This document shows, in pieces, positions 1,597-59,050 of a stretch of DNA of 64,000 nucleotides (position 1 is its first letter; the number at the start of each line of letters is the position of its first letter). Made by a program: the position numbers and the translations under genes. Source of the DNA: Auanema rhodensis. Taxonomy: Eukaryota; Animalia; Nematoda. The notes beneath the pieces are model-generated. The model ran no database searches and was not told the origin of the DNA. It saw nothing but the letters and a program-made list of their open reading frames with translations. The stretch lies in assembly GCA_964057225.1 (NCBI GenBank), contig OZ059898.1:13206001-13270000 (forward strand). The letters run 5' to 3'.

Positions 1597-1633
1597 ACGT
1601 GACTACGTGAAAGTGCAAAGTCAGTTCACGTAA
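1597..1633. repeat. Dispersed ACGTG-box element, degenerate copy
   Basis: ACGTGACTACGTGAAAGTGCAAAGTCAGTTCACGTAA; no CGGTTG partner seen. Confidence 0.45.
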
Positions 1634-2839
1634 CGCAACTAGGATAGTTGTATTATCATGAAGCAATTAAGATAGCAATTAATGCTTTGAATGAAATTAA
1701 TAAAATTAACTAAAGGTAAACAACTAAAATATAAAATAATCATCCTATGTAAATTCTTCGGTAATCCGCTAGAATCAGCAAAAGGATTAAATAACGAAGA
1801 TCTACGTACAAGACAAGCAGGATTTCCACTGTGGGAAAAAGGCATTTTTTTCCGAAACAGTGAGATATTGGTGATTACAGCGAGCGATCACAATCACTTT
1901 TGGCCGAATAACTGATCCATACGGCTTTTTAATGAATAAATTCTTAAATACATTCAAAAAACCAACAACACCAGTTAACAAACGGCCTGGCCCGCTCTTT
2001 TTGCGAATAACATGGATACCCTATTCCGTGATTGGTTAGCAGTAATGCCGCTGCATGTTCATTTTGTGAAGACAATTCTCACAATCCACATAGTACTTTG
2101 AGAAGATAAGGAAAGGGAAATGGAGAAGTTAGTATGAGTAAGCATGCATGTGGGAACAAGTGTGTCATCTATTCTCGTGAGGGAACGGTATCAATGGGGA
2201 AACATTTTGGATGAATGTAGATAATGGCAAATGGAGAATACACAAAGAAAACCTAGCGACATATGGTACTCTGCGCATTTCAGTTCAGAATTAGAGCAAC
2301 CCCAAAACGATGTTGCACGTAGAATGTGTTTTCATAAGTAATTGGAAAAGCTGTAGTATTTGATGTGGCTTGAATCAATTAGGATCAATTGTATGCTTGA
2401 TAAATCTTCTGATAAAGCTATATATTTTTGTATTTAAATTTCATTAATTTCATATTAATTTTCTTATTTTGAAATCTAATTGTTGTAACATATGCTGCTG
2501 ATGATTGAAGTTGTTGTGGTGTTAATCTGTTGTATAATCTGAGATATATGATATGATATGATGTTGCATGATTGAATCTATGTATTTGAAAAATGAAACA
2601 AAAATCCCATTATATGTTTATTGCATTGATTATATTGCATCTGTACATTATTATCTGCACAATATATAATAAATATTTTGTTTGGTTGTTGTATGAATGA
2701 AAACAGACGAGGTTATTATGATTGACGAGGAGAGAGAATTTGAGGAAAAAATAAAAAGAGAGATAGGTTACACATAGTATAAGGAGAATTGATTGATAAC
2801 ATTTCTGGAAAATAAATTATCAATATCATGAAGACAGAC

Positions 2840-2871
<32 letters not shown>

Positions 2872-4235
2872 GAAAACAAATAACATGAAGAAAAGAAACG
2901 TTCTCTATCACCAACCCGCTATCGCAAGAAAGTGCTCTGGGTAGCTGATGAGCAGATCTACCGACCTGTAAGGATATGAGAGTTCAAGCTAAGCTTGAGA
3001 TGTCATTACACACCTTACAAGTGGCAAATGCTCTTTCCGATTTACTAAGTTAATAGGCATATGTATTAAAAATATGAATATAAGTAAAAAAAAATAAATA
3101 GGAGATTGAGGTTATAGTTACATACAATTCTTCTACTGTATAACAGCTAGAGAGAATGATAGAGAGAGGGAGAAAAAGAGAAAGATAGTTGTGAGGGCTT
3201 ATATGATATTTATCATATGGTATAGATAGAGAAGAATATTCCTTTTAACTATATGATATAAATTATAATAATGAACAATATAATAAATACAAGGAGAGAA
3301 TTGAGACGTGAAACGAATGCTCCTGAAAGCACCTACTAGGTAGTTCTACCGGTTTTGTTCTATCACTTTTGATGAGAAGACTTCCTCGTCGATATGGATC
3401 TAGGCTTTATGGAGGATGAGAAAAATAAAATTAAAAACAAAAAAAAAAGCTCCAGAATACCCGTCCAAACGACGACTAAGGTGTTAAGTGTTTGAGAGAG
3501 AGGAGGAAGAGGGTCTGGAAATAGTGATATACATGCTTTAAATTCTAAGAATTATGGAAGGGCAACCTCCGAAAGGGAGGAAGTGAGAGGGAGAGAGAGA
3601 GTGAAAGGCTAACGAGAATCGTAGTTTGTTGTTCTGGTATTTGAGTAATAGAAGTGTTGATTAAAGGAAATAAAGGCACTTATAAAATCCAATAAGGACA
3701 CTTCGAATTGAGACACGATGTTTCACAGATAAATTAGTTTGAAAAGGCACAATATGGGAGAATAAGACGTATTGAAAGAAGATTTTCAGTAAAGAAAACA
3801 AATTCCGAAGATCTAAATTTAGAGTACAATATGTATAAATATATATATGTATATAGTGGGATAAGCATATGAAAGAGATTATTGCTATTCACGACACATC
3901 AGTAGTTTCAAGTTGTAATCCAAATTTAGATTATCTTTACGAGAGATATGGAAAGTTTCTGAGTAACTAAGAGAGGAAAAGCACAACCAGCTAAAGAAGA
4001 GAGTGAAAAGCGAAATCTCATTGGACAGATAAACGATTTCTTTGAATGTTCTGGATTCAGAGAGGGATTGAACAAAGAGAGAGAGAAAAGGCTCACAGCC
4101 AAAAAAGACGGTGCAACCGGCATTTACAGTTATTATAAGTCAAAAATGCCAAAACTCGGCTCAAAAAATGTGAAAAAAAAACAAAAATGCTGAATCAACA
4201 GCGTATTTATATGATTAGGAGCTTTTGGTCTGCGA

Positions 4236-7200
4236 TCAACATTGGCTGACCGGCCGATTTCGACAAGTTGTATCTTCACAACAACATACTCGGACGATGC
4301 GACATCCACAACCACTTTGGAGGCAATGAGAGACTTTGATGTCCTGAAATAAGAATATGAGATTGAATCTTAACACGAAAAAGGCAATGTTGATGTTTAA
4401 GCTTAATCTTTAGCAAAAGACTCAGCCAACAACATTCTTCAGATGAAACATACCTCGGCGGTTTGGGAGGCGGCATCTGACTTTTGAGGGGACGGAGCAT
4501 TTGAGGCCATCATTGGACTACTTTGTTGGGGTAACTCCTTTGGCTTGGGAGCAGCAGCTAGGGGCAACTGCTTCTTGGGAGTTGGAGGAGCAGCCACAGG
4601 GGCCATAGGTTGACTTAAAGCTGCCAATGTGGATAACATGTCCATACCGCCAGCAGCTCCGATCATGTTGGCCCATAGTAAGCTCATAGTGTCCTGTTCA
4701 ACATTCATCCAAGGGTTAGCCCTGTAACAACAAAAATTAAAAATCATAAGATGATATTGTAAGTCTTACATTCCGTTGAGCATGTTGGCATGTAAAAGAT
4801 TTGCTGTTTGCTCTGCGGTAGCGGTTTTGGGTTGGGGAGGAACAGCGGCAGTTTGGCGGAATGAAGAATCAACTTTGACATTTGTGAAAAGTGAAGTAGT
4901 ATCAACAAGTCCGAATGACTGAAACAATATGGGATTAACGATGTATTCAGAAGAAGAAAGAAGAAAAAAATCTTAAATTTGAAAAAAAAACTTACTGGAT
5001 CAAGCTCAGTCTTAGGGAACTTTATGAGGTTGTTCATCATGCTATCTGGGAAGACTTGGCTTGTTGGATATTCTTCTTCTTCTTCAATTTTCTGCTGCGT
5101 GTTAACCTTAAGAGGTGACAACAATCCCTCGTGTCCATCGAACATCATCAGTTTTCTCTTTTGTGGGTTCGTTGTTCGAGATCTTGGCTTGCGTGGTTTT
5201 CCAACACGAGAACGAGCAAGTTGAATACTCTTTCTAAGTCCCTCTTTGTTATCGAATGTTACTCCTTTGCTCAAATATTCACAGGCTTGATTAACAAGTT
5301 CACCGGCATCCATATCGGGATTCTCAAGAGCAGCCATGTAGAGTTGAGACTGAAATTGGAAAAAAATTAGATTTTGAAGTGTTGTTGCTGAAAAAAACTG
5401 AAATTCGTTCGAACCCTGAACGCTCATCAATGACATCTGGCCCCTATTTTCAGAAAAGTTGTCAAACTTCTGGCTGACTAACTTGCCCTCAAACAACATG
5501 TCGTTCACGAAATTATTCTTCATCGTGGTCATTCACTCATCTGTCTGTTCGATACGCAGGTCAGATACGATAGAATGGATACAAAGTGCAGTGGCAGTCG
5601 GTGGCAGGGACGACGACGCCAAGAAAGAGGTCAGTAGGCCCGTGACGTCTTATTATTCTGTGCCATTCAACGACCCCGACATCGACTATCGTTTGACGTC
5701 CTTGATCTGTTTTCATGTTGCTACGATGCAACCAGACTGACGAAGACGACGTAGTACCTGAAGACGCGCTTTCTTCGTTTCGGCGCCGCCGATGTCGTAC
5801 ACAGTGTACCGGAATTTCAAAAGTTGTTCCTTTCCTGTTGACCTATCGCCGACTTCTGCAGATGATGTCGTTATTGTTGTTGTTGTTGTTGTTGTTAATG
5901 GTCAAAGCTAGATGAATGGAATACAGCCAGTTAGACTGACTTCCATCATCCGAGTAGATTTCTCGAACAGGAACGACCCGGAGACGGATGTCGCCGTGAA
6001 TATCGCCTTGTCCTCCTCCGACGTCGTCGACATAGAAGCAGCCGTCGTCATCGAACGGTCGCCTCCATCATCATCTGATTTGACGAGCGCTCGTTGTTCA
6101 GCCAAACGAAGAAAAAAGGGAAACGCAAGCGGGGTGTACAGAAGGATATTAAGTATAGCTAATTAGGCCCCTCGGCTACAGCTATTTTGGATAAACAAGG
6201 AGAAAGCCTAGATGGATATACTGGGCAAATAAGTGAGAGTGAAATGTCAGATTGTCAATCGCCGTTTTTCTCTCTCATTTTCTCTCTACCGAGAATGTTT
6301 CCCTGAAGTCTTTCTAGCTCACATTTCTCTTTTTCTTCTTTTTTTTTTCATTGACCATTCCTCTTGTTCTATGTACATGTTCTATTTCTACGAATGACCC
6401 TTTCTTTCCATTCCACAACTCTCCGTGGTCATCGTCTACCTCTTCATCCACAAAACCATATACAGGCATCTTCGCTGACGATGTAGGAAAACGATTAACG
6501 TTGGCCGCGCCTCGTCGTTGTCCAATTGACACCGTGGTCGGCGGCGTTAGTCAGAAAAACGACTGGCAGATAACCTAGATTTGGCCCATAACCCAAAAAG
6601 AGAGAAAGAACGACGAGATGCTGCAGCATTGGGTGGTCAGGACGATGCTAAGATGATGATGATGAACAGCGGTATCGAAACTGTAGGTCGTGAACATTTT
6701 CTCAGAATAGAAAATAACTAGAACTGATGTGAGAAGAATTTGTCGCTTAGATGCTGTAGGCTTCCGTGCGTCATCATAATCAGCTTCACAATGTTTTAAA
6801 ATTCTCAAAATCACGCGTGTAGGAAAGTATGAAAGATGGGCCCGAGTGATCGAAATACTTTATCAGTTTGGAATTCTTGTTCATTGTCATAGGTGAGCTA
6901 GATCAGGTGGCAATCATTTCGAAATATTCTCTGATTTCAGTGGATATCTTTCAGTCATCTGTTGCGATTCAGAAAGTATGCTCTGTTACCAATAGATGGA
7001 AAGATTTAAAAGCCTCAAAGTACAGCACAAGTTCATATCCAATATTCCGTAACAGCTGAGCTTTCATAGGGCATAGTAAAAAAAGTTAGAAATTCAGGTA
7101 TCTATTGAGATAGATACGTTGAAAGAGAGGAATAGGGAGGTCTGCAACTGGACTGGACAGGGCGACGAAGAAGGGAAAAGCTAAACAAGCTTGGAAGCTG

Positions 7201-9064
7201 CTGATAAGATAGCATTCTGCCATCAACTCACTGGCCAATGAAATTTGTTGATAAGGTGTTTCGGATTGCTTGCTGTCGCTTTCAATTGAATGACGACGTC
7301 AATTGTTTGCTCATATAAGGGCAAAAAGAGTCAAACTCATCAGAAGTTAACAGCGATTATGCCATCGTTATGGCCATTTTAGTAGCAAACTACTGATAAC
7401 ATCAGCATGTTATTCAAAGGAATCTGGAGATGATCACAGTAGAAGAGAAGGACGTTTGGTTGAAATTACATTTTCGTCCCCCAATATCTATGAGTTCATA
7501 AAGCGATTGATACTTTGGAAGAGAGAAAGTAATCAAATGACTCCAATGTGCCTTCTCGATTTTCGTTAGAATCAGCAAAGTTCGTTTAACCTGATTCAGA
7601 CAACATAGAGGAGCGTGCTCCCGAAGCAGGAGGAAGATTAATGCTTTTCAGTTTTGACACTCTCGTGTACTCGCAACAGCCCAGGCTGTAATGGCCGGTC
7701 TTTAAATAGGGAACCTGGGCAAGTTAAATGTGATAGTTAGCGACGAGAAGTTCAAAAGCTGGAAGGACATTATGTGAGAAAGTGCTAAAGAATGTTGTAA
7801 ATGATAGAGAAGCAGAGATTACAAGATTGAAAATGAAAGAGAGACGGACTAACAGTTGGTAAATGGTCCTCAGCATAACCTCAGTTCCTTCGAACCTTAT
7901 CACATGGCAAACAGCCCCACGGCTCAAAACTTTTTATCTTTCGTGACACCACCAACTTCCTCTCTTCATACCTCTTGTCTCTTTGTTTCTATAGTTCTGT
8001 TCTTACCTTTGTGTTGTCTATGAAATGTGAAAAACATTGCAAGATAATACTGTGGCAGATGATAGCAGAACTAGAGAAAATGAAGATGAAAACGAGAGAC
8101 ACGATCTTTAGATGCCGTTGTGCATTGACCAATCAAAATCAGCTGACTGCCAGCCAGGTATCAATATTTAAAACGCATCTGGTGGTCATCAACATGGCAA
8201 GCTAGAAAATCGAGTTTTCGAACTATCGTTCCTGCTCGTGCTTGATAGGCAAAACGATAGCTGAGCTCTGATCATCAATATCATAGAAAGTATTGTGATT
8301 AAGACTGCTGGACGCAAAGCCTTGAACTAGAATACGTGAATACGAGCGACTTCTAATGTTTGTTGTTTGAATTTGACCCAATAGTTGTGAAAGATGATGT
8401 TGATTGTTGTAGTTGTGGCTGCGCCGTCACAGACGAAGACCATCATCACCTCCCCCCCCGGGCACTACTAAGTGGTGGCAGGGACGAGATTGTCATTGAT
8501 GAGACAGAGATGAGCGAAATCGCAGAAAATCGTAAGAAAAATTAGGTTACCTTAATGAATTCGAGTTCAGCTACAAGATCTTTGGGTGGATGATTGTGCT
8601 CTCCACGGGTAATGGCGTTTTGATCATCCATCGTCGTCTCGGCACGGCATTTACACCATGTTCCACTATCGGGAATCTTTTTGGCACACACGCAGCGCCA
8701 CGATTTGAAATTACGATCAGGCAAGACCTAAAGTGGAGCATGAGAAAGGTTGAATGAAGAATAAGCATACTTGGTAAATGTTATAACGATATCCCTTATA
8801 CATAAGCTTCTGATAACCTTTGAAGGAGGTAACTAGTTGTGGTACATTTGGATTATAACGTACGAATTGAATCTGAAAAAACAGTTGATGATGAAGAAGT
8901 TTTTGGAAGCAAATTTGGAATTTTTGAATTAAATCTATACGAACTTTCTTCTTCTCCTTTTCTGGTGATGGCGGAATACTGTTTACACTGACAGGAGAGA
9001 TGGCTGATGTCTCAGTCGATGATGACGATAGATCAGACGATCCGGCCTTTTCCAGACCCAACAT
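4236..9064 (-). CDS. peb-1: FLYWCH-type transcription factor, PEB-1 orthologue (7 exons: 9064-8945, 8872-8771, 8727-8551, 5349-4996, 4918-4770, 4721-4454, 4343-4236)
   Basis: The spliced protein starts [27 protein letters not shown]. It has a FLYWCH domain ([22 protein letters not shown]...SWRCVCAKK...CKCRAET...GEHNHPP), then [12 protein letters not shown], and a Cys-rich C-terminus ([23 protein letters not shown]). All of these match my recollection of C. elegans PEB-1. All introns are GT-AG, and a TTCCAG acceptor directly precedes the ATG. Confidence 0.95.
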
Positions 9065-11844
9065 CTGGAAGAAAGTTGATGATAAATTCGAAATGAGAAC
9101 AATAATAAGAAATTATAAGAAAAACAAACAAAAAGAAGCAAAATAAAGTTAAGAAAAATTATCAAATAAGTTGGAAAAGTTTGGAAAGAAAGACAACGAC
9201 TCATTTTACTATGAGATTATAGTTAAGGATTGTAAATCAGCCGAATAACGGGAGTAGCATAGACATCCCAAGAATTATATAAACAATCAGAAATATAGAT
9301 GAATATGTAGAAAGTTTAAGAATATTATTAAGAATATAGTATGGCAGAAGAACAGACAGAGTATATTGTATCTCGACGACGAATTCCTCAGGCTGGCCTG
9401 GATGAAGGTGAAGGGCCAAACACGGAATGAGGACGTCCAAAAGCGAAAGTTGTCGCGGAAAATGGCTGGATATAGTATGTAGGAGAGGGGGTGAAAAGAT
9501 GGGGGGGTGATGGACACACACTGCCCCCGAACGAATAACAGCAAGAACAGATTGAAGAAACTGTAGGAGGAAAGGAGTGCTAGACGACATCGGATAATAA
9601 TGAGATTGGCCGTTGGACGAGAAGAGGAGGACAACCACGACAGGGAGATCGTGGATTGATGGAGGGGGACAGTGGACGACGAAGTAAAGGCAGAATGACG
9701 TCCGGCGAAGATGACGGGAAAGACGTGAACGACTACAAGAACTGACCAGCCCGTGGATGGATAGATGGATAGTTAGGGGAGAGGGTAAAACAAAGATGAT
9801 GATGATGTTGATGATGGTGGAGATGGTGGGGAAGACGACGACAACGACGACGAAGATGACGACGTCAACGAAGAAAAAGAAGATGAAGCGGCCGTATGCG
9901 GTGTCGGCGGCGAAAGGGGGTCGACGACACCCATTTCTAACGACAACGACCAACGGCTTCGTGCAAAAACAGAAGGAAAATTGTGAGAGAGTATGTGAAA
10001 AAGGTGATAGAGAGACACAAACAGCCTTTTCCATATAGGGTCAAAGGGGAGAGGAGTGGAAGAGTATGATGAGAGGCTACGGCTGAGAGAAATGGATAAA
10101 AAGAGAGAGACTGTGAACAGGATAGACTACAGGGCATACAGCGCCTCAGGCAATAAAAGCAAGAGTGACCGACTACTAGGGGGCAAATCGAAAAATTCAT
10201 CTCTCTTTCTTGAATGTTCTCTTTCTCTCTTTTTTTCTCTCATTCTCTCAATTCCGATGGTATTCATCCTCATTCAAAATCTTAATCGGCACAAGCCAGA
10301 CTTCGATCAGCAAAAAAAAACAAGACTACCACTCGATTCAACAACATACACATATAACGCCTAGGGCGGAACTGTGTCGCCGGCCTATTCGACACGGTTC
10401 GGATCCGGGACAGTTGGCTGTTTGGCAATATTGATGACGTCAATGTGCTGAATAAGTGTGTGGAAGGGCTGAGTATGAAAATAATGGAAACGATGCGCAA
10501 CATTACATGGACGATTGGCACAAAACAGCGTCATAGCGGTGATGCAAAAGCATTGATGCTAGCTAGCATTATGAAGCAAATGGATGATATGCGGAAATGA
10601 AACATACTCAGCCACATTTTCTTTAAGTTTTAAAGAGAAAAAAAACGAATCAGATGAGTAGAAAACGTTTTGTCAGAGAGGCAGTTTCCAATGAAAAACT
10701 GCTTTTGTTCGGAAAAAATAGCGAACGGCACAATGATGATCACGAGAGCAACAGGTGTAGAGGACAAGGAACGTCATGAACGAGCTAGCTGATGATGCTG
10801 TTAGCGCATTCAGATTGTGAAGCATGAGGACGAAGAAACAAAAGATTGTTCAACGATAATATTTAAATGAAAATCGGATGAACTAGTTGAAGTTTGAAAC
10901 GGCCAATGATTTGTGTTGTGGAAGAAGGAAAAGGTAAACGGCGGTGTCGTAGTTGATGTACAGGAGGAGGAGAGTGATAAGCGCTTAACCAAGCCACGAG
11001 ATTCAAATAAAACGAAAGGCTGAGTGGCAGACGAATAAGGGCAAGCTACAGTTCGGTATTGAATAGCAGATTCTTGTTTAAGCATGAAATGAGTATGCAA
11101 CAACGATGTGATAGCAGGAATATGGAAGAGAGTCAGAGGTGTATGGAGTTGGAAAGTGATGTGACATGATGGGGAAGAGATCAGTCATTGCTGATGCTAT
11201 GTGTGGCAAAGTGTTCCGTAGCTTATCAGTACGTCCAGGACACAGCCAATGTGATTAGGCTGGTAGCTGAAGGGTTATGAGAGAAGATACAAAGAAGGAG
11301 TGTCCTACCTTGAGTCATAGACTAGGGACACGAACTAGTGCTCTTATAATTTGGTTCAGCTCTCTATCTCGATCATCTCAATTTGCTATAATCTATCAAA
11401 CTGATCACTTGGCTGTCTACAAGTTTTGAAATTGTTCTTTTGAATGTTGTGTGGCACGTCGATGTGAGAGGGAAACGAGAGTGAACAAGAGTATGAAAGA
11501 GAGAAAGACAGAGAGAGATACATCTGATGAGTGAAAAAGAAAACGATAGATAGAGTGCGAAGCCAGCCACAGAAACAGCAGTAAGAGATCAGAGCTCGGA
11601 AAGAGATCTGGCTTAGAGCCATGGTGCGCCTGCTTGTTAGGTCTGTCTATTGCTCACTCTTGATCTTTTCCTGTTTCTCAGCTTTTGCCTGTCTTAGCCT
11701 ACTCTTCTCTGTCCAGCCTGAACATTCTTGAGGGCATAGTGACGTTACGTGTGTTGGTTGATTACTTGGCTGGCTTGCTGATGACAATCAGCTGATAGCT
11801 AACAGGCTGATAACGACGGCAGACCATGCGCCCCTCCTCTCAAA

Positions 11845-11951
11845 GTATATATAAGGCAGTTTCTTTGTAAAAGTTCTTACTTTCTGATAACTTTCAGACT
11901 GTTCGAATGGAAAAACAATCCAGAGTTGTTATCTGGTGCAAATCATCTAAG
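11845..11951 (+). promoter_or_regulatory. TATA box + acceptor + ATG + donor: candidate first exon of an unannotated + strand transcript
   Basis: GTATATATAAGG at 11845-11856, CTTTCAG at 11891-11897, ATG at 11907, 15 codons (MEKQSRVVIWCKSSK), then AAG|GTGAGA donor. Confidence 0.35.
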
Positions 11952-12877
11952 GTGAGATGACACAGAAAAATAGAAAGGAAAAGGGAAAAAAAAACGTGGC
12001 CGGAGGGGATATGAATCTGCAAATGTCGTCCTATCTTCTGCTTTGTATTGTTGATCATATGAACACTCGTCTGTAGAATGGAGTGAGATGTACATGTGTG
12101 ATTGAACTATCAAGAGATGCCACAAGGCTAATGATGATGCACTCCAGCCAGCTGACTGATCTGATCTGATCACCTTTGACCTTCAGCTGTTGGAATCCAA
12201 TCAAATGATAACAATATCCAATGAATGCAAAAGATTTTTGTTTTTTCAGAGAAGTAATAACTTGACTTTTTGAATGACTTCTTATCCCGGAGTAGGGAGA
12301 GAAACAGATTCCCAGGCCTAAGGATGGATGAGAGGGAAGTGTATAATACAGAGAAGATGTGATGAAATGAAGATATATAAAGTAAAAGAGATGAGAGAGA
12401 GAGAGAGAGAAAGAGAAGGCAGAAAGAGTTCGGTGTCGGGTAGTTATGGGCTGGTGCTATGGTTGTGGCCCTAATAGGGGACACGCCGACGGTCACCACC
12501 GTGCGCACGCCAACCAGTTTCACTTGGCACAGATTTGGACGACGAAAAACAAGCCGCCAGAGATGCTGAAACGGACGATGAGATTTTCGATGAGCAGGAC
12601 TTGAGTTGGTTTATGGAACAGGCAGATAGGTTATGGCGTCAAATGTTGAATAGACTATTCGGCTGGCCATTTGACTACATGAATAATCTCAGGTTTTGGC
12701 CTTTACATGTGCGATGAGGATGGTATTGCTAAGGCTCGAGAAGCCGCTTGTCCTTTGTCAACAAAGAGAAAATGGCCAAAAAGATGTGTGAGCCAGGCTA
12801 AAAGATAAAACGATATGAAAGAAAGAAGTACGGAGAATGGGAAGACAAAATAAAAAGAATAGTGAGGTAGTTTAAGG

Positions 12878-12955
12878 AGAAGTAGAAGTAGAAGGAGAAG
12901 AAGGAGAAGAAGGAGAAGAAGAAGACGAAGACGAAGACGAAGACGAAGGCGACGA
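12878..12955 (+). repeat. Compound purine-rich simple repeat (GAAGTA/GAAGAAGGA/GAAGAC)n
   Basis: Tandem units are directly visible. Confidence 0.85.

Positions 12956-21689: not shown

Positions 21690-21692
<3 letters not shown>

Positions 21693-21724
<32 letters not shown>
21693..21724. repeat. (AG)n microsatellite
   Basis: Directly visible; similar tracts lie near 2840, 22578, 29787 and 42840. Confidence 0.9.
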
Positions 21725-21735
<11 letters not shown>

Positions 21736-42863: not shown

Positions 42864-42896
<33 letters not shown>

Positions 42897-46560: not shown

Positions 46561-49500
46561 TTACTTCTCCTGAACAGCACGGGTGCGAGAACGAATGCGG
46601 ACGAGGCACTGCTCAGCAGAATCAGCACGTTCTTCAGCGGTTTCCAATTGGAGTTGGACGGTACGGTATTTTCCGAGATGGTGGTTAGCTTGCTCCTCCT
46701 GTAATACAGTAAATTATAATTCAAGCTTTTTTAATGGGAAACTTACAGCATCCTCAAGCTGCTTCTTTTGGATCTTCAGCTTAGCAGACAACTTTTCGAC
46801 TAATTCTTGAAGCTTGTCATAGTTCTTCTTATCTTCGGCAACCTAAAAGCAAAAATGTACATTTGTTTTTCTTATCATCTTCTAACCTGGAATTCGAGTT
46901 CTCTAACGCGTCGGTCAGCGCGAGCCAAGTTCTTGGATGACTCGCCTGAACGTCGAGTTTCGCTTTCGAGGTCCGTCTGAAGGGACTTCAGACGTTGCTC
47001 GGCCTTCTGGACGGCCTTGGCTCCTCCCTTCATGACGGAAGCCTCAGCGGCATCAGCACGGTCTTGGAGATCCTGGAAATGAGTTGACATTAAAGTTCGT
47101 TATTAGATTTTCCAATTTTCATCGTGTATTTATCCCCGATATACTGATAAAAGATCGAAAAAACGAGGTAAGATGAAGGAATAAGTATTTCCTGGTTGTT
47201 ATTAGAATGAGATGAGATGAAAGCTGGCCTTATGACGTCAAAAACGAAAAAGATTTGAAATCTTCAAAGTGGCAGGTGATCATTCAGATACTCGATAGTG
47301 CGTGGTATTCGAGAGCTCATTGTCATCTATTTGCTTAACGCCTATCCGGCATCAGACATAGTGAATTCAGAAGAGAACGACGCAACCGGAGATAAACGAA
47401 TAGAGATTCATCGTAAGTTTCGAATATTATTCGGCAGATTTAAGAAGACAAAAGATAAAGAGAGAAAGACAGAGAAGAAAATGAGAAGAGAGAAGACTTA
47501 AGAGCATACTATGTGTGTGTATGTGTCTGTAAGTGGGATTCGCTCAGCTGAATGTGGCTTTGTGAAGTCGAGAAAAAAAGAAACAGATAGAGAAGTTGCC
47601 GGGAATCAGTAAACAGTGTATGCGATTCCTAGAAGCGTCCGGTTTCTTCTTGATAATCTTAGATCGTGAAAGAATTTTTTCCACACTCAAGAGCTTTTTG
47701 AAAATAATAGTTTCGTACAAGAGTTAAAATAATAATTAATTTGAAATTCAAATGAGAAGAGCTTAATGTATCCCTGATCAAGCAAAACCAAATTTCTCTT
47801 ACCTTGACCTGGCTTTCCAGTTGCTTCTTGTATCTTTCGATTTGGAGACTGTGGTCTTGCTCATGTCTCAGATCCTCAGCCAACTTAGCGGCATCAGTCA
47901 TGGCACGACGTCCACGATCTTCAGAAGCAGCAAGTTCGGTCTGAGCCTCAGCAATGTCGCTCTGAAAATTGCTTTTGTAAAAAGATGAAAATGATCAAAT
48001 TCCCGTACCTTGAGGAGAGAGATTTCGTTGTCAAGTTGGTTCTTGGCAGTAGCGTAGGCAACGTTCTGGCTGTTCAATTCATTGTTTTGCTCTTGGTGTT
48101 CCTTGACGGATTGCTCAACAACACGACGAGAACGTTCGATCTGAAATGAATTTAATGTTTTGAAAGTTTGTTGAAGTTTAAGCATGAAGAAGAATGTATT
48201 TGAAACTTACGGCTTCAAGCTTGACAATAAGCTCTTCTTGCTCTTGCTTGGCAACAGCAAGCTTACGCTCGGAGCAGAGGAGGTGCTCTCTGAATTCCTC
48301 ACGTCTCTTTTGCTCCTCGTCGATGGTTTGTTGAAGCTCACGGGTTTGGTCCATGTATCTGCGGATGTTTTTCTGAGCATCCTCGTTAGCCTTATTGGCA
48401 TGATCGAGAGCGATCTCAAGCTCGTTGATGTCGGCCTCCAACTTCTTCTTGACACGGAATAAGTCAGCCTTAGCCTTGCTCTCAGATTCGAGGGTAGCCT
48501 GAATGAAATTTTGCACTACATGAAAGAAGATTTCAACCTTACCTGAATGGAGTCGATAGTCTGTTGGTGAACTTTGCGAGAATTCTCGAATTCTTCTTCC
48601 TTCTCGGCAATACGCTTCTCGATCTCGGCACGGATTTGTTGGACTTCAATGGAGCAACGGAGAGATTTGCTTTCTTCAGCTTCAAGGGCGGCTTCAGCTT
48701 CATCAAGACCTCTTTGGAGCTCTTCCTTCTCCATTTCGAGACGGCGAAGAGTTTTTTGGAGGGAGTGGGTAGCACGTCCTCCTTCTCCAAGTTGTTCAGA
48801 GAGATCTCTGACTTCATCTCCAAGAGCCTTATTCTCTCTCTTAAGACCTTCAACCTGATCAGCAAGAGCATCATGTTGTCCACGAAGCTTGTGAGCTTCT
48901 CCGGCGAGTTGACGGGCATCACGTTGAGATCCGTCGAGCTCGAGGTATAAGTCATCGACACGCTTCTTCCATTCGTCAATAACCTTATCGAAGGCCTTCT
49001 GCTTCTTCTCCAAGGAGCCAACAGCTTGAGCATGGTGTTCAGCTTCAAGACGGTTAGCATCAGCCTCGGCAGTAAGTCTGTAAGATGGTAAGGTACATCG
49101 TAAAAAAATCAAATGTCAGGTTGCTTACCTGCTTCTGGCGTTCTCCAAGGCGACGATCTTGGCGTTGCAAGCATCGAGTTGGTCTTGAATTTCGCTGGTC
49201 TTGGCGTGTTGACGTTTCTTAACCTCATCGAATTCATCGGCTCCGATCAAGCCCTCCTCTTCGAACTTAGCTCTCCATTGCTCCAACTCAACCTGAGCCT
49301 TTTGAAGCTGGCGAGAGCATTCGGATTTTCCGGCGATCTGAAATTCAATATTATTCTCATAGGATTAATTGAATTTGTTACCTCGTCTTCAATAGACTCA
49401 CGGAGCTGTTCGAGCTCACGGGTAAGGGTCTTGGAGAGGTTGCTAAGATTTTGGCGCTCACGGCTTTCATCATCAGCAAGACGCTTAGCTTGATCAAGCT

Positions 49501-52500
49501 CGTTGGAGAATTGAAGACGGAGGCGAGTAGCAGCCTGGTTCTTAGCTTCAAGCTCTTCAACTTGACGGCTAAGGTCAGAGTTTTCGGAGTGAAGACGTCC
49601 TTTAGATGAGACGAAGTCTTGAAGTTGACGGCTTTGTTCATCAGCCTTCAAACGGAGCTCGAGAAGACGGACTGAAAAGTATTTTGTATTAACTTTAAGA
49701 GTATAGAAATAGAATACCTTCGTGGGACTTAGCGATTCTCTCTTGTTCAGCACGAGCCTTAGCTTCAAGATCAAGAAGGGTAGAAGCTTCGTCAAATTCA
49801 CGTTGCATGTGTCCCTTTTCCTTTTCGGAACGGATCTTTTGCTTTTGAAGTTGTTCGACTTGGTCGCCTAATTCTTGAACAGCATCAGCTCCCTTTTTCT
49901 TCAAAGAAGCTAATTGTTCTCCGAATTTTAGTGAAGATTCTTCCAAATCACGACGTAACTTGGCAACTTCCATGTCCTAAAACATTTCAATGTAACTTGT
50001 AGAAATACATATGTATATCTGACCTTTTTCTTTCCAAGCTCGATTTGAGCAGCATAAGCACGAGCTTGCTCATCAAGTTGATCCAAAAGCTCATCGTATT
50101 CGGCTTGTTGATCAGCACGAGCACGATCGGCACGAGAACGAGCCTCCTTCTCATCAGCAAGCTGATCGTGGAGATCCTTCATCTTAGCTTCATCCTGTTG
50201 GATAGACTTTTGAAGTTTGGCAACAGCGGCCTGCTCGTCTTCCAACTTCATTCCCAAATTGTGAAGTTCAGTCTCTTTACGGCGAAGGCTGTTTTCAATG
50301 TCAGACTTAGCTTTGTTAAGCTCTTCCATTTCTTCTTGGGCGATCTTCAATTCACCCTCGGCCTTTCTCTTAGCCTTATCCATATCAGCGCGGTTTCTCT
50401 TCTCACGCTCCATGGCAGCTTCAGAGTCTTCAAGGCTCTGCATAAGTTTAGCTTTAAGCTTGTTGGCTGCCAAATTTTGTTCCTCAGCAGCAGACAAGTC
50501 TTCGCTCAATTTTCTAAAATAGATCGTGATTAGTGTACAGTTGTGCCAATCTAAAATTTACTTGTTGGTTTCGTCTTGATGCTTGCGCTCCTTGTTGAGC
50601 TTAGAGATATTCTCATCTTGTTGACGCATCTCGTCTTGAAGAGCCCGGATTTGGTGTTCCTTGGCCATCTTTTCAGCTTCAACCTTACGAAGAGACAAGT
50701 CAATGTCTTGACAGTTCTTCTTGAGTTCAGCGCATTCTTGCTCAACACGCTTCTTCTCTCTGGTCAATTCGGTGGCAGCAGCTTCCTCAGCCTCAAGGCG
50801 AGAAGAAGCATCTGCCAACTTGTTTTCCAAAGCAGCCTTCTGCTCATTCATCATAGTCATACGCTCTTCGATTTCCTAAATACGTTATATAAACAAGTGT
50901 TGAAGAAGATGTTGCTCACAGTGTTGGTTCCCTTGGTAGCTTCCAATTGAGCCAAAAGTTCAGTGGTCTCCTTTTGAAGACGGTCTGCTCCTTCGGTCAA
51001 TTGACGTTTCTTTTCTTCTTCCTCTTCCAAGGTGGCCTTGAGAGTTCCAATAGTATCTTGGAGCTTCTCGTATTGCTCTTCAATCTTTCCAGAAGCAATG
51101 AGAGGCTTGACCTGAAAAACATCATATCATAAATCATATAATCACTTTTCTGCACAAACCTTTCCGTATAACTTGAACCAGGACCAGGTACGAAGGCTAA
51201 CCCAGTTGCGGATGCTACGTTGGATAACCTTGAGTCCTTCTCTTTGCTCATTAAGACGCTTCTTGTTGACTACTTGGTAGTAGAAGCGGATTTGAGCTTG
51301 GAGTCCAGTCATAAGCTCAGCAAGGCGACTGTCACGTAAATCTTCAAGATGGGCAACAATACCAGCCTGGAAACAATTGCATGAGATAAATTTAATAAAG
51401 GATTTGATATGATAACCTTGAAGAAGACCTTGGTGAGTCCTACTCTGAAGTTATCATCAACCAATTTCTTCTCCTTGACTAAACGGGCAAGCATAGCTGC
51501 TGATCCCTTCTTTGGATCTTCTTTTCCCATGATGGCTTCATCGGCAGCAAGAAGAGCGTAACGTTGAACGAAGTCGGGGTGGAGGGTTCTGTTGGGGAAA
51601 CCTTTACGGCAAATTCTGATTCCTTCCAACACACCGTTACAGGTGAGCTGGTTGAGAACAAGACTAGCATCGATGACACCTAAACTCAGATGATATGGAT
51701 GTGCTTTTGTTCGAACTTATACATACCACATTGTTTCTTCTCGTTAGGAATGATACAACGGATGAAGTGAGGATGAGTAGAGTTCAACATGTTCATCAGC
51801 TTGGTGAGGGATTCACGGTACAACATAGAGACTGTCATGAAAGATCCGGACTTACCCTTCTTCTTTCCACCAGAAGCTGAAAATAGAAGCATTTTTGTAT
51901 CCGTATTATGATCGGTAAGACATACTCTTAGCCTGAACGGCAGCTTCTTCTTGGGTGGTGTAATCTTGCCAGACTTCCACGAGGAGGTCGTTGCTCTTGG
52001 AGTTCTTCATGGCTTGAACAACAGTGTCGTTCAGAGGGTCCTTGTTCTTCTCGAGCCAGTTGGTGACGTTGTATCTGACAGTACCAGCGTAGTGACGCAT
52101 GGCGAAGTGAGCTTCGGCTTGCTTGCCCTTTGGTGGTTTTGGCTTCTCGAAGTTAGGGTGCTTGCCCAAGTGGACATCGATGAGCTTAGTAGCAAGAGTG
52201 ATGTCACTAGCCTTTGGTACAATACATTCTTCGTCAAGCATAGCAATGATACCCATAGGCTACAAGAATTAACTCAAAAAATGAAATAGAGACAAGGTAA
52301 TACCTTCTCAATAAGTTCGATACAGGCTTGAAGATCAAGACCGAAATCGATGAAAGTCCATTGGATACCTTCACGAGCATATTCTTCCTGTTCAAGGACG
52401 AACATGTGATGATTGAAGAACTGTTGGAGCTTCTCGTTTACGAAGTTAATCCAGAGCTGTTCAAAGGAGTTGAACTGAAAATTAAAATTGTTCTGCTTAT

Positions 52501-55377
52501 TCTATCTCAGAGCTTACGTCGAAGATTTCGAAACCAGCGATATCAAGTACACCAATGAAGTGATCACGGTTGATACCTTGTTGATCAAGAGTCTGGTTAC
52601 ATTTCTTGACAAGCCAGTTGAAAAGTCTGGAGTAAAGACCCTTAGCCATAGCTCCGACAGCCCAGTTGACCTGAACAATTTAAGAAATTGAAACTTGATC
52701 AGACGCTATGCCATGTTTTACCTGTTCCAAGTTCTGTCCCTTGTTGACCCATTCGGCTCCGACCTTTACACGTGGGCGAGTCAAAGCCTTCAAGAACTCA
52801 TCAGAGTCAATGCCGTACATAGCAGCGGCCTTTTCAGCTTCGTCGGTTCCATCAGTCTCAGCCTGTTCTTCACGTGGACGTTGCTTGAACTTCATGTTAC
52901 CCATGTGCATCATAGCGGACACAAGCTTGTAACATTCCATTTTCTCTTGAGGTGAGAATTTGAGAATGTCGAAGGCTTCATCAGTAAGAGCATGCTCTTC
53001 CTTATCGTTGATACCATCGATCTTCAACTCAGCTTGAGCAACAAACCAGTAATCCTTCACAGGCTTGTCGAGCATAAGATCTTTGAGCAAAGTTGGAACA
53101 TGTCCAGAGAAAACTTGGTAGAAGATGTGATAACAACGCTCTCCAGGAGCTTGACGAATGACACGAGATTTCTCGAGAAGGTAATGTTCAATATCGCAAG
53201 AAGCGACACGTCCTTGCTTAGAGAAGTGAATACGGATGAATTTTCCGAAACGGGAAGAGTTGTTGTTACGAACAGTCTTAGCGTTACCTGAAGCATATTA
53301 GAAAGTCAATGTTATCTCAATTAGCTGAACTTACCGAAAGCTTCAAGAACGGGATTGGTTTGAACAATCTGATCTTCAAGGGTGACCTTGCTCTCGTTTT
53401 GATCCTTCTTGCCGTATGTCTCTTGTTGTGAAGCTCCGACAGCGGCGAAGTAAGCAATTACCTAATCAAAATGAGTTAGATATTAGATGAAACATTAGCA
53501 AACCTTCTTGGTATTTTCAGTTTTACCGGCACCAGATTCTCCGGTAATCAACATAGATTGATTTTCGTGATTTTGGAGCATATTGCGGTAAGCCTCATCT
53601 GATACAGCGAACAAGTGAGGTGGCATTTCAGTTCTACAACATGTCATTAACTATATGATATAATTAGAGTTCTATCTTACTTTCTTTTACCCATATACAT
53701 TCTAGCTACAGTATCGGTATAGATAGGTAAACGTTTGTATGGATTGATTACAACACAGAAAAGTCCGGAATAAGTCTGAAATGTTTTGAAATAAAACAAC
53801 ATGTATAGTTGATGAATGTAGTATATATGATTTTCCTTTTCCAGACATCCATAATTGCATTCTCATCCTTCTTCTTCCTAATACGGTATTCCTAGTGAGC
53901 TCATTAATCTTATAACATTCGATGATCTGATGATCTTCTTTGTTGAGTAAGACTCAGCATGAAATCCTGTTTACAGTCTTCCAAACTTTGGCCGTCCACC
54001 TTAATATCTGCCTCTCCCTTTATCTCTCCTCTTTCTCTTCATCTTTCTATGCCTCTGCTCATAAAGCTCGAAGCTTAATACTCTATATCTTCTCAATCTC
54101 TATCATGACTGTCTTGCTCGTGCCGTGCAAACAACTTCATCATCGTGAACTCTCTTCAATTTTTCTAATCTTTTCTTGAGTACTTTCATTGAATGTGTTG
54201 TAATGTGACTTCGCCATGCACAGAAGAAAAGATAAAAAAGATGAGGAATAGCATGAGAGTTTGATAGTTGAAGAGAAACTATCAGCACTAGTTAGTCTAC
54301 AAATCTCAATGCACATACATACATGTTGATTGGCTCATCCATTCGCTCACTCTCACTGTCTTTAGCCCGAACTAACGAATTTTGAAGAAAACATTTAAGT
54401 AATTTCTTACGTAAATAAGCATGGCAGCGTAACGAGCTCGAAGATTGTATAAAACAGAAGCATCGTTTAAGAAAGTCAAATTTGACATATCTTCGGTTTT
54501 TTCGAATTTAGGAGGATTCATCTCCTGGACTTGATCTGCTTTGAAGGTTTTCTGAAAATATATAATAGTCATCCGTTCTCAATGGCTTGTAAGCTTAAGC
54601 TTCAATGGTTTAAAGCTTAAATCATATTTCCTCATCTTGTACAAACCTCATTTCCCTGTCCGATAGCAACGGTAACATTATCACCTTCAGTCTTCTTGAT
54701 GATACCCTCAACATATCCTTCTTCTTCATCTGGGACCCAGCAATTCTTCTTAGAGTCATATGGTCTGGATTGGTCCTGCAACAGTAAGAATATAGAACTT
54801 TAGATATGATTCATGATGCTAATATCTTTTTTCTGAGATTTAGAAACAATGAAAAGAGATTCATTCTGAAGAATTTTGTGATCGAAATTCATGATATTTC
54901 TCAAGAAATTGCTCAGTGAACGATGTGTAGAGTGCTTAGCCTCTTTGTCAAAACTAAACAAATAAAAAGCAAATTAAGATAAAAGTTTGAGATGAGGGCA
55001 TTATTCGTTAGTTTATCTATAAGATGTATACAAAATGTATAATATTTATAGATTATATTACAGTAATAATACTGTAGAACTATACTAACTATATGTATAG
55101 TTAGTTAGTTCAAGAATTAGTTCAAGATGAGAGATGAGAGATGATTCTCAATAGAATATGGCATCAGAATTGCTGGAATGTCGAATCAGATATGTAGAAA
55201 ATGAAATATTTGAGTTATTTCTTAGTAAAACCAATGGAATAATAATAAAACAATTAATTTAAATCTCAGAATAGGATAACTATAGCATTGTAAAGAAGCT
55301 TGAAATTGCCATACCTCCAACATCTGCTCTCTGCTTCTGCGCAGATATTGCCATCCAGGATCGTTCTCGTGGTCCAT
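46561..55377 (-). CDS. myo-2: Pharyngeal myosin heavy chain, MYO-2 orthologue (~26 exons)
   Basis: N-terminus [32 protein letters not shown]; P-loop GESGAGKT; NNNSSRFGK; DIAGFE; a long coiled-coil rod; C-terminus [27 protein letters not shown]. The termini and segments such as [14 protein letters not shown] and RLVKEKKL match MYO-2 better than other muscle myosins, from memory. Confidence 0.92.
53960..54140. promoter_or_regulatory. Candidate pharyngeal enhancer in myo-2 intron 3
   Basis: PHA-4/FoxA-type TRTTKRY sites: TGTTTAC (53968-53974) and TGTTTGC (minus strand, 54127-54133). The second directly abuts CGTGCCGT (54119-54126), which fits the PEB-1 consensus YDTGCCRW. Confidence 0.4.
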
Positions 55378-58300
55378 TGTTGCCTGTAATTTCAGAATTA
55401 GAAGGCCTTTTCTTCAGATAGTAAGCAATGAAAAAACGAATTTCGAATTAACTAATTACAAAAGCTAGAGAATAATTCAGAGAAACGATGCTGTAGTTCG
55501 GAAAAATGGAAATTCGGATTTTCGATTCATCTGAAAGAGTCGTCAGCAGGGCTGTCTGGACGGCACTACGGAGAGAGATGCGGACTGTCGTCGAGTCGGA
55601 GGATTCCGGTGGGCGGATGATGAGCAGCAGCCGGCTTGAGGATCTCCAGAGGCGGAGCTTGCGATGTCTCTCGCCCCCGTCCTCCGTGCTCGTCTCAACC
55701 AATCGTCGGTTTGAGTCTCGACGTCAATCTACACTTCAGAAGGATAGGGAAGCAAAGTAGCAGAAATAAAATATTTCTTCTTTTCTCTATCTCTCTGTGC
55801 TTGCTTATATCTGTATATCTTTCGGGTCTCGGCTCTTTTCCTTTATCTCCCTCTTCTGTCCTGTCTCTCTCTATCTCACTCTCTCTGATACTTTTGCTTC
55901 ACATTGCGATCTTTCTTCTCAGTATTTTTTCTAATAATTTCAATATTTCCGAAAGCGAAAAGAAGAAAGAGGGAACTGAAATATACAAAAATTTCTTAAA
56001 ACAAGTCTTAACAGCATAACCATTCCTAAGATTGTATAATCCAAGTTCTGAAAAACTATTAAATTTAAAAACTTACAACTTAAAGATTTTGATTTGAAAT
56101 TTGTTTGTTGGCAATACCGTAATACTTGCACTATGCTACAATACACTGATAACGAAACAATATCGAATGTTGGAATGAAGAAAACAGTATTGATAATCAC
56201 ACGACAAAAGCCTGGAGCAATGTTGCCAAAGTCATTTTTGAAAAAAAAAAATATGAAGCCATAAAGTTCTTTTGCCTCGTTCGGCACTCCAACTGAAGCG
56301 TCCCGCTCAGAACGAAGATTTCAGCAAACAGAAATCCTGTGTGTATATTCAACTTTGCCTTTAGACACCTGTACTCTCCGCAACACTCTAGCCTGTTCGT
56401 TAGTCATTTTCGTGAAATTTTCTTTTCACCTTCCTATGTCTACTCATATCTCTTCCTCTTTATCCCTGTCGTCAACTAACTCTCTCTCTGCAATCTTTGT
56501 TCTTTTCCAAATCTTTCTCACTTCTGCTTACTTGACTTCAGAAGATATCATTCTATATCGTGATCATTTAGTAGCTGCCAACAACGATTCTGACTCTCAG
56601 AACAGTCTTTCTTCATTCCTACCCCTTCAGCTTCTCTTCATAAAACTTTCTAAACTTGAATCCCTCATCTCTTGCTCTAACTCCTTGTCTTCTTGCACTC
56701 TCTTTCTCTCTTAATTTCGACTAATCTTTGTCAGCTTTCCGAAATAACTTCATAGAGTCATTTGCACAAATAATTTTGATGTTCAAGGGATGTGAACGAT
56801 ACTTTCGTTTTAATATCAGAATTATAAAATAAATTGATTATTCTACAAATGTTTTGGACATTTTATTTCATTTCAGTATTTGCGTTGTATTGATGTATCC
56901 TCAAGCGTTAAGTTCTCAATGAAGTCTAAAGTCTACACCAATATGAACACATGAGAAGAACTAATATCTGTATATAGTATGATCGCTACTGATACCGATT
57001 ACTTCAACCATGTATGAATCACAGATCACACACATATACGAGAGTGTATATACTATTTATGTAATATATACATGAACAGATGTATATATTTTCAAAGAAA
57101 AACATTCAATCTTTCACTCTCGCCATGATAAAGAACTCTAACCACATGTGTGTACTACCTAATACGCTGATATCACAATTCTATGAATGTCATTTCCAGA
57201 CAGGTAATTTTATCAAATATCCTATCAATGCTTACAAAAAAAAATTGAAAAGAAATTGAATTAAAGAACAAAGGCTCAATTGTAATCTAGGAATGACATG
57301 ATGTGGCTACAAAAAATCTACCAAACATGTATAAACCGAAAAACACAGACAGTCACAGGGAATTTATTTTATTTTGATTATTAAGTTTACTTTTATCGTC
57401 GTTTTTCCCTTTCTTTTTCATTTCTCATCTCATCCCGTTACCTGGCTCCTTGTCCTCCTCATGCCGTTTCGTAGAAGACAAACTGAATGGCACTTGAGTT
57501 GCGGAGGCGAAAAGCGTCCGCAACGACCTCCTTCTGTAGATTTTCTTTAAGAATATCTGTGGGGAGGTCCTTTGTGTATCTCTCTCTATCTCTCTCTCTC
57601 TCAAAAGTGTTTTCAGCACTTATGCACCTTCCCTATCAGAATTCTAAGGTGTGTGATGTAAAGCTAAAAAAAAATTCAAGTTTCTAGTTTAGTTTGTCCA
57701 TAGATTATAAGTTTTGTAAGCCAATGAAGCTGAATAAGTGTCATAAATATGAGACCAATGTAACGATATAGAAAGATAACAGGCATCATAACATTTCTCA
57801 AGTTACCTAATGCAGATAAGAAACCAAATTTTTGCTACATAAGAAGCATCTTCACCAATGGAAAGACGTCAAACCCTATCCGCCAATATCAAACGGAAAA
57901 TTTGCGATCATTTCGTAGTATTTGTTATCAATTTTCATTAATTGTTGTACTTTCATAATGCTAAAACTTGTGTGAGAGAACAGCTTAATCCTCGCGGCTG
58001 AGTAGAGGCTTAAACTGAAGCAGACAGTAAGTCTATAATGAATTTTATCTGTGAATAGTTGATAACACTGAAATCCACTCCAAATACGCATCTTACTAAA
58101 GAAATAAAATCTTTATTTAGATTTCTTATCACTTCAGCGTTTATCGTTTTTCAGTATTCAAATACATCCGTATATTAAATGATATTTGTTGATTTCAAAA
58201 AACTCAAAGAGGAAAACAAATAATTTTCAAATAAATGTCTATTCTGAGTCTTCAGAGAGATATCCTGAACTTCCATAAACTCTAAACAGTGGATAAGCCT

Positions 58301-59028
58301 AAGCATGATGAGTCTCGAACAGTACTAGTTTCTGGTCATGTTAGACTCACAATGGTATATTAAGTGGGCTAGGTTGCATATTATAGATAAGAGCTTTTAA
58401 AACTGTAATTTCGAGCATTGAATCAAAGATAAAATAATTTTATTATAATTTGAATGATATACTATAAGAAATTTATGAAATTCTAAAAAGATTCAAAAAG
58501 CAGAAAAAGGAAGATCTTAAGGAGTTTTAACTTAAAAAAAAGAATTTGATGGCTCATCTGATTCTTTACTATCATCTTTATACATAATAAATATTCAGAT
58601 GTATGTTTTGTTCAATAATCAGATCACAAGTTCACTTTAAGACGTAAGATATCTACGGAAATAATAGGAACGATTAAATGATTATTATGTTTGTGAATGA
58701 AAGAAGAAAGTATTTAGTGAGAATTTTTATTTATTTGTCAAACTTTGACAATGGTGAAACATTATGTTCCCTACGTAGTCGTCAATATATCAACAAAAAC
58801 AAATAAATAATAATAAATACAATATATATTATATTCTTATTTCATATTGAAATCTAGTTATCAGATGTTCTGTTGAAGAAAGTACATGGGTTCAAAAAGT
58901 TCCGGTCTGGAACATTAAGATAACAGAAAACCGATTTGGCATAAATGGAGATATAAGACGAGATGTTAAATGATATTCTCTTTCGATAATTTTCAACTAA
59001 AAACTTTATACAAGCATGAGAACTCAGG

Positions 59029-59050
59029 TTACGTGCAACTTCACGTGAAA
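59029..59050 (+). repeat. Dispersed ACGTG-box element
   Basis: TTACGTGCAACTTCACGTGAAA; no CGGTTG partner seen. Confidence 0.6.

Follow-up and report, generated by a model that had tools for sequence, protein, structure and literature searches.

In the tandem E1-E2 E-box, two hexamers separated by a 6-7-nt spacer are bound cooperatively by two BMAL1/CLOCK dimers (PMC3043000; PMC2242825), and activity drops at spacers of 9-10 nt and recovers one helical turn further on (PMC3043000). Modules of transcription factor sites can also be dispersed by transposons, as in the transposon-derived circadian enhancers of mouse (PMC8240256), and two-part motifs are known from DNA elimination in Caenorhabditis auriculariae and C. 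monodelphis, where parts of 13-14 bp and 11 bp, with a 9-68-bp gap between them, are found at a few dozen sites of telomere addition (PMC13370393). Here we describe an element with features of each of these in a 64-kb stretch of the genome of the nematode Auanema rhodensis (contig OZ059898.1; referred to below as the window), in which a pair of E-box-like sequences is coupled to an oriented CGGTT(G/A) site. The Auanema sequence examined comprises the whole window and 23 kb of the syntenic locus of A. freiburgense (locus L001).

A two-part element is dispersed through the window

The element is dispersed through the window about once per 7 kb, far above chance. All nine sites listed in a preliminary description of this DNA are present, and are referred to here as copies 1 to 9 or by position (1597, 22792, 27270, 32377, 33646, 35001, 36129, 40069 and 59029; Table 1). 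Each spans ~90-100 bp and consists of a double box, often CACGTG-N6-CACGTG, a weak TCATTT, and then (A)AGCGGTTGTAT; oriented on CGGTTG, the consensus is CAGTTCACGTGAAc-TTCACGTGAAagATAGT followed after 19-56 nt by (A)AGCGGTTGTAT. The invariant part of the box is ACGTGAA, and the other half-site is CAC or TAC, or sometimes TGC, GAC or AAC. TT is present at 13 of the 26 flanks of the 13 CACGTG sites (reading TTCACGTG), and with half of the flanks of this kind the half-site is TT(C/T)AC, of the T-flanked TCACGTGA type. Measured from centre to centre, the boxes are 12 bp apart at 22792, 33646, 40069 and 59029 (6-nt spacer) and 11 bp apart at 35001 (5-nt spacer), with different spacings in the other four copies.

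Direction is given to seven copies by a CGGTT(G/A) on one side, as reported previously, the site being CGGTTG in six of the nine and CGGTTA in the seventh; at 1597 and 59029 it is replaced by a degenerate and closer TAGTTG. Four of the oriented copies form two convergent pairs with the boxes outermost, 32377/33646 spanning 1.29 kb and 35001/36129 spanning 1.14 kb, the second of which brackets a small secreted gene. None of the coding exons recognisable in the window overlaps a copy, in agreement with the earlier assignment of the element to non-coding DNA. Outside of these features there is little that the copies share: when the copies and 100 bp on either side of them were scanned for common k-mers, only the boxes, CGGTTG and the weak TCATTT were recovered, the flanks do not align between copies, and there is no common sequence downstream of CGGTTG. 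A profile built from eight units identifies no further decayed copies in the window or in the A. freiburgense locus, and a bacterial promoter and terminator scan of the window merely re-detected the palindromes.

Enrichment was evaluated against dinucleotide-preserving shuffles of the window, 100 for single patterns and 200 for box clusters and bipartite arrangements. There are 13 occurrences of TTCACGTG against 1.35 expected (shuffle maximum 4), 33 of ACGTGAA against 6.7 (maximum 15), and 14 box clusters against a shuffle mean of 1.5 (maximum 6). A box cluster with a correctly oriented CGGTT(G/A) at 10-80 bp occurs six times against 0.04 (maximum 1); this strict rule skips 36129, the inclusion of which gives seven. 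No shuffle equalled any of these four counts. CACGTG itself is found 13 times against 4.7 expected, and the TTCACGTG at 52869, within a myosin exon, is probably a chance match. CGGTTG alone is not enriched in the window (16 observed, 10.5 expected), although six of the 16 sites sit 35-56 bp from a box cluster, and the CGGTTR sites are strongly oriented, with the boxes on the 5' side at seven and on the 3' side at one. What is non-random is therefore the association of CGGTTG with the boxes together with its orientation, and not CGGTTG alone.

Table 1. Copies of the two-part element and genes recognised in the window. Coordinates are those of the window.
Feature	Coordinates	Strand	Composition and setting
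Copy 1	1595-1653	+	Three ACGT-core boxes (AACGTGA, TACGTGAA, TTCACGTAA); close degenerate distal TAGTTGTAT (1645-1653); between chromodomain ORF and peb-1 3' end
Copy 2	22754-22811	-	CAACCG (22754-22759), 29-nt spacer, CACGTG-N6-CACGTG (22792-22809); in conserved non-coding landscape upstream of peb-1
Copy 3	27227-27301	-	TAACCG (CGGTTA variant), spacer, three boxes TTCACGTA, TTACGTGAAC, TTACGTGAAC
Copy 4	32374-32443	+	Variant ACGT-core boxes GACGTC, TTACGTCA, TTACGTGAGAAG, TTGCGTGAGAAG (variants also include TTACGTGAG, TTGCGTGAG); CGGTTG (32438-32443); convergent with copy 5; spacer resembles that of copy 8
Copy 5	33589-33667	-	CAACCG (33589-33594), 51-nt spacer, perfect 22-nt palindrome TTCACGTGAACGTTCACGTGAA (33646-33667)
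Copy 6	35002-35069	+	TTCACGTGAAC-TTCACGTAG, spacer, AACCGGTTG (35060-35069); ~540 bp upstream of small secreted gene, directly 3' of minus-strand exon
Copy 7	36078-36145	-	CAACCG (36078-36083), adjoining TTCACGT, spacer, ACGTACGTGAAGTTCAAGTAAC (second box decayed)
Copy 8	40069-40144	+	TTCACGTG-N6-TACGTGAA, 47-nt spacer, GAGCGGTTG (40139-40144); ORF with signal-peptide-like start 89 bp downstream
Half copy	45350-45389	+	Copy 8 spacer and CGGTTG without boxes, inside 720-bp repeat
Copy 9	59029-59060	+	TTACGTG-N6-CACGTGAA, close degenerate TAGTTGAT; no CGGTTG; ~5 kb upstream of myosin heavy-chain gene
Chromodomain open reading frame (ORF)	728-1042	-	
peb-1	about 4236-9079	-	
Exons of gene of unassigned family	35157-37055	-	No Pfam match; surrounds small secreted gene
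Small secreted Cys-rich gene	35607-35962	+	Spliced; ATG at 35607
Bestrophin	38240 to about 39864	+	
ORF	about 40228	+	Signal-peptide-like start
Srsx chemoreceptor	41362-42635	-	
Trypsin-like exons	about 43750-44400	-	
Myosin heavy chain	about 46875-54000	-	

Descent among the copies and retention of the blocks

The spacers have diverged while the boxes have been kept, as noted previously, and 19 of the 21 spacer pairs show no similarity. The earlier statement that 35001 and 36129 are the only copies to share spacer sequence is right for that pair, in which 35008-35086 matches 36141-36062 as an inverted copy at 79.5% identity over 83 bp (spacer z=6.9), with the similarity starting and stopping roughly at the element limits, but 32377 and 40069 also do so, more weakly, having AACGCA-ATT-GC-TG-GAGCGGTTG in common (z=3.9). 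This residual similarity suggests that the copies are partly related by descent, with whole units having been copied in some instances. A direct repeat 5.2 kb apart (40090-40807 and 45335-46053; 720 bp, 99.2% identical) reflects a recent duplication, and because it carries the copy 8 spacer and CGGTTG without the boxes (Table 1), the element is not an indivisible mobile unit.

The boxes served to find the copies, and their conservation is thus partly a matter of ascertainment. CGGTTG was not used in this way and is kept, whereas little of the DNA separating it from the boxes can be aligned, which excludes uniform neutral decay of a single repeat family. The blocks are far better kept than the spacers, and the pattern expected of an ordinary transposon family, with copies aligning end to end and boxes no better kept than spacers, was not found. 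The preliminary description proposed either a miniature inverted-repeat transposable element (MITE) or a protein-recognised element, and this choice brackets the evidence well, with blocks that outlast their spacers and two pairs that share them; its more specific suggestions fare worse, as discussed below.

Comparison with A. freiburgense and other nematodes

At the syntenic A. freiburgense locus ACGTGAA is again over-represented (nine observed, 3.0 expected), and the beta-hexosaminidase gene, with four ACGTGAA boxes in 2.3 kb, harbours a single complete bipartite copy (CAACCG, a 19-nt spacer, two boxes) in one of its introns. The positional orthologue of the 1597 site (at about 14934 in L001; 367 against 391 bp from a common anchor) keeps TCACGTGAA, i.e. 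T(T/C)ACGTGAA, and at the place orthologous to copy 2 (L001 about 1789) AACGGTTG is kept on the 22754 side. The comparison lends modest support to constraint on the blocks.

No ACGTGAA excess and no tandem boxes are found at the peb-1 loci of C. bovis (L082; five observed, 3.6 expected) and Cylicocyclus (L083; two observed, 3.6 expected), and an unrelated nematode locus (L080) has no ACGTGAA excess either (three observed, 3.4 expected). Lineage specificity is thus shown at one syntenic locus. Two hits of a search with the bestrophin exon, from assemblies of other nematodes (GCA_958450365.1 and GCA_000183805.3), served as composition controls only, and four further contigs from Logan (L002-L005) derive from a more distant rhabditid and end short of the element sites. 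The GCA_000183805.3 locus (L081), from what we take to be Loa loa, has six ACGTGAA against 1.6 expected and two tandem groups, one of which has CGGTTATAT between its boxes. This hints that the box alone could be more widespread among nematodes and, with CGGTTA present in one group, that box and partner may be older than Auanema. The tandem CACGTGAAC boxes are at 13407-13440 and 17225-17262 of that locus, and the group with the CGGTTA site between boxes reads TCACGTGAAC-CA-CGGTTATAT-GATGG-ACGTGAAAGG.

Relationship to described systems

The double box resembles the E1-E2 element in its CACGTG-type hexamers, in its 5- or 6-nt spacers, in the A that follows GTG (CACGTGA), and in the second box often being imperfect. 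It differs in that the boxes extend on both flanks to TTCAC|GTGAA, that an oriented CGGTTG accompanies the pair at a distance of 19-56 bp, and that copies occur at ~one per 7 kb, mostly distant from gene starts. We know of no canonical CLOCK/BMAL1 pair in rhabditid nematodes.

Intact boxes are also similar to the CLEAR sites of MiT/TFE proteins (HLH-30, TFEB), with T at -4 and A at +4 (TCACGTGA), and one A. freiburgense copy lies in the beta-hexosaminidase gene, a gene class that is a classical TFEB target. In contrast to CLEAR sites, which lack a CGGTTG partner, many of the Auanema boxes are TTACGTGA, CACGTAA or TGCGTGA, and the neighbouring genes in the window (peb-1, bestrophin, chemoreceptor, myosin) are not lysosomal.

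With transposon-borne modules, such as those carried by MITEs and Helitrons in Caenorhabditis or by transposons in mouse, the element has in common that it is a short dispersed unit carrying a cluster of binding sites, that it is abundant in one lineage, and that some copies retain residual homology. It differs in that no parent transposon and no terminal inverted repeats within a unit were found, that no target-site duplication was seen by eye at the pair 35001/36129, and that most of the spacers are unalignable. Its likeness to the bipartite elimination motifs of C. auriculariae and C. monodelphis is one of architecture only: two short motifs, a variable gap (19-56 bp here), and a 7:1 orientation bias; the elimination motif of Auanema itself is described as a different, 29-nt palindrome.

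The same 10-mer, TTCACGTGAA, forms parS sites and 11-bp iterons in bacteria, often in tandem at 11-12 bp. A metagenome scan for perfect TTCACGTGAA-N1-2-TTCACGTGAA returned 74 contigs (L006-L079; 27-69% GC), often with arrays of 3-6 units at an 11-bp period that resemble prokaryotic iterons or partition sites. The setting is prokaryotic and the CGGTTG partner is present in only 1 of about 80, not beyond chance; we reject kinship and regard the match as a coincidence of sequence. Literature searches with the motif strings returned only bacterial parS papers and no nematode motif, and a search with CGGTTG and C. elegans binding motifs returned only primer sequences.

A candidate composite binding module and its alternatives

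We tentatively interpret the element as a dispersed composite binding module of the Auanema lineage with a role in cis-regulation, possibly seeded by an old mobile element, and give this reading a probability of roughly 0.45. The element most likely binds host regulatory proteins; we infer the binding, the identity of the binders, and the regulatory function from the arrangement of the sequence. The left block would provide tandem extended E-box or ACGT-core sites with the half-site TT(C/T)AC|GTGAA. Because the box centres are usually 12 bp apart, two basic-region dimers could sit side by side on nearly the same helix face and bind cooperatively. Candidate binders are class-B basic helix-loop-helix (bHLH) dimers, whether of the MiT/TFE type (HLH-30), of the Max network, or AHA-1-containing bHLH-PAS; the constancy of the GTGAA half and the variability of the other would suit heterodimers with a common subunit, as in the AHA-1-containing class. 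The right block, (A)AGCGGTTGTAT at 19-56 bp, would recruit a second and asymmetric factor, with the two blocks together forming a composite enhancer-like cis-regulatory module. The two oriented copies that have secreted-protein genes starting downstream are in keeping with such a role. All eight distal sites read CGGTT(G/A) and match AACCGGTT at 6-8 of 8 positions. CGGTT(G/A) could thus fit both a Myb-type CNGTTR (= YAACNG) and half of a Grainyhead AACCGGTT site, which is a lead only and not an assignment to either family. The family probably spread at least in part by duplication or transposition, after which the blocks would have been kept by selection as the spacers decayed.

Several observations weigh against this interpretation. 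Most copies are distant from any identifiable gene start. TTACGTGA, CACGTAA and similar boxes depart from the classical MiT/TFE site, which makes a bZIP or another family an equally good candidate; Myb and Grainyhead, likewise, are leads only. At 22792 the A. freiburgense orthologue is without both ACGT cores, and the elements are less conserved in that species than the adjacent non-coding blocks. ACGTGAA survives at four of eight projected sites, where retention averages 20% across all 7-mers; this puts it in the top 12% and is not significant alone.

The main rival, which we consider unlikely though deserving of serious weight, is that the copies have no function and are what remains of an old non-autonomous DNA transposon, either a MITE or a solo terminal repeat. 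The boxes and CGGTTG would then be the outer and inner transposase-binding sites of a ~90-bp terminal repeat, and the pairs 32377/33646 and 35001/36129 the two ends of 1.1-1.3 kb elements. The copying of whole units evident in copies 6 and 7 and in the 32377/40069 spacers fits such an origin, as do the two convergent pairs, with boxes outermost and similar spans, and the high density specific to Auanema at the syntenic locus. However, the blocks outlast the spacers, and eight different spacers in nine copies would require dozens of subfamilies with nothing but their binding sites in common; the search with the eight-unit profile, moreover, turned up none of the further decayed copies that might be looked for. 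The box block and the CGGTTG block are unrelated, so that the ends of one unit are not inverted repeats, inverted similarity being confined to the separate copies 35001 and 36129, and the ends of the pair 32377/33646 have only the motifs in common. A spliced gene of host type lies inside the pair 35001/36129, at which no target-site duplication is seen by eye, given fuzzy limits and AT-rich DNA, and there is no transposase-like ORF among the ORFs of at least 90 aa in the window. The orthologues of 1597 and 22792 are both occupied in A. freiburgense, with no empty site among these two.

Alternatively, the copies could be compact promoters or upstream activators of small secreted-protein genes or of unannotated short transcripts, ordered as double E-box, CGGTTG, TATA-like stretch, and start site, which we regard as improbable. 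A TATA-like sequence is present 0-25 bp past CGGTTG in most copies (GTATATAT, GTATTTAT and TTATAAC, with TTTATATATA in A. freiburgense), and same-strand ORFs with signal-peptide-like starts begin 89 bp past 40139 and 542 bp past 35064. The preliminary view that placement is not promoter-biased is broadly right, but has to accommodate two of the seven oriented copies pointing into small secreted-protein genes downstream. For the other five there is no plausible same-strand ORF downstream, however, and TATA-like strings are common in this AT-rich window. A TATA box of its own stands ~100 bp upstream of the ATG of the secreted gene at 35607, and 36129 points into the 3' end of the same gene. The copies have no sequence in common past CGGTTG, and no Rfam RNA or tRNA was found in a scan of the window.

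There is a similarly slim prospect that the element is an oriented architectural or chromosome-biology element, acting as a boundary, insulator, or loop anchor in a lineage without CTCF, or as a site of DNA elimination or X-chromosome behaviour. A double-box binder and an asymmetric CGGTTG binder would read it, and convergent pairs would bracket small gene units. The directionality, the regular density of about one per 7 kb, and the two convergent pairs bracketing small units, one of them an apparently nested gene, are compatible with this, as is an outline like that of the bipartite elimination motifs of C. auriculariae and C. monodelphis (PMC13370393). A. rhodensis eliminates two thirds of its germline genome, and the Auanema elimination motif (SFE) is described as a 29-nt palindrome strikingly similar to that of Oscheius tipulae, the centre of which is a conserved GGC-N3-GCC; it is present at 28 break sites, while the 60 Mb of DNA that are retained contain just four strong matches (bioRxiv 10.64898/2026.08.27.747507, 10.64898/2026.03.06.709695). 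GGC-N3-GCC (GGCNNNGCC) is present in the window at 1984, 5782, 6503 and 8417, none of them at an element, and there are no telomere repeats (TTAGGC) in the window. The element has a density that is off by orders of magnitude from that of the SFE, a somatic genome broken every 7 kb in DNA so rich in genes would not survive, and we reject the element as an elimination SFE; the suggestion of a cleavage or telomere-addition site is accordingly not supported. A role in condensin recruitment for dosage compensation (a rex-type site), also suggested earlier, is unlikely because the DPY-27-type duplicate of SMC-4 is reported to be absent from the Auanema/Oscheius/strongylid lineage (PMC12629237). Nor can X linkage of the window be inferred from C. 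elegans, as had been proposed, since just some of the genes on the C. elegans X are also found on the X of A. rhodensis (PMC6469403). Lastly, a by-product of chance or base composition, for which the unremarkable frequency of CGGTTG alone could be cited, is refuted by the shuffles.

If the composite binding module is a working one, it would be a compact and easily recognised Auanema cis-element, the density of which extrapolates to thousands of copies per genome. It would have a three-part logic, composed of an E1-E2-like tandem E-box, an oriented partner site, and a flexible gap, with readers that could be found by pull-down and a logic that could be tested by transgenesis, which, like genome editing, is established in Auanema (PMC6345965). 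It would also offer a clear example of a regulatory motif that multiplied within one lineage and was afterwards retained by selection, whereas a decayed transposon end would be ordinary. With the massive DNA elimination and odd X inheritance of Auanema, a genome-wide map would separate gene regulation from chromosome biology.

Genes and other features of the window

Over its long exon at 4747-5532 on the minus strand, peb-1 shares 87% identity with a FLYWCH protein of Auanema sp. JU1783 (A. freiburgense), compared with just 55-68% for proteins of Diploscapter, strongylids, and Caenorhabditis bovis, which marks the window as DNA of another Auanema species and not of C. elegans. Upstream of peb-1, the interval from 9 to 26 kb was previously referred to as a gene desert, but it is not empty: window coordinates 9079-25806 and L001 1-10000 share ~25 collinear non-coding blocks with 80-96% identity, and the stretch is probably the peb-1 regulatory landscape, as this collinear conservation suggests. 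It is ~1.7x longer in the window species than in A. freiburgense. In one of the blocks (20673-20888, corresponding to L001 2880-3095), CAACTG lies 28 bp from a CGGTTG and the two sites are also present in A. freiburgense; 60 bp upstream there is only a degenerate box (TCGTGAA). The order of peb-1 followed by a same-strand beta-hexosaminidase gene is found both in A. freiburgense (L001 10001-18763) and in C. bovis (L082 10001-18114), and represents conserved microsynteny.

An intron of the opposite-strand gene of unassigned family apparently contains the small secreted Cys-rich gene, an arrangement that is bracketed by copies 6 and 7. In an exhaustive representative search with the bestrophin exon there was no match above 58% identity over more than one stretch. 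The 720-bp repeats enclose the Srsx chemoreceptor and the trypsin-like exons; each repeat copy has an ORF with a signal-peptide-like start, and immediately past the first copy, at 40809, the opening 19 nt of the unit are repeated. A MITE- or foldback-like palindromic element (44677-45114) lies close upstream of the second copy, with 132-nt arms that are 97.7% complementary, ~175 nt between them, and no ACGTGAA boxes. Long (GA)n/(CT)n microsatellites are present at 27111-27183, 33749-33843, 34072-34132, 42832-42901 and 62259-62353; such tracts are generally abundant, and several lie within 50-150 bp of copies 2, 3 and 5.

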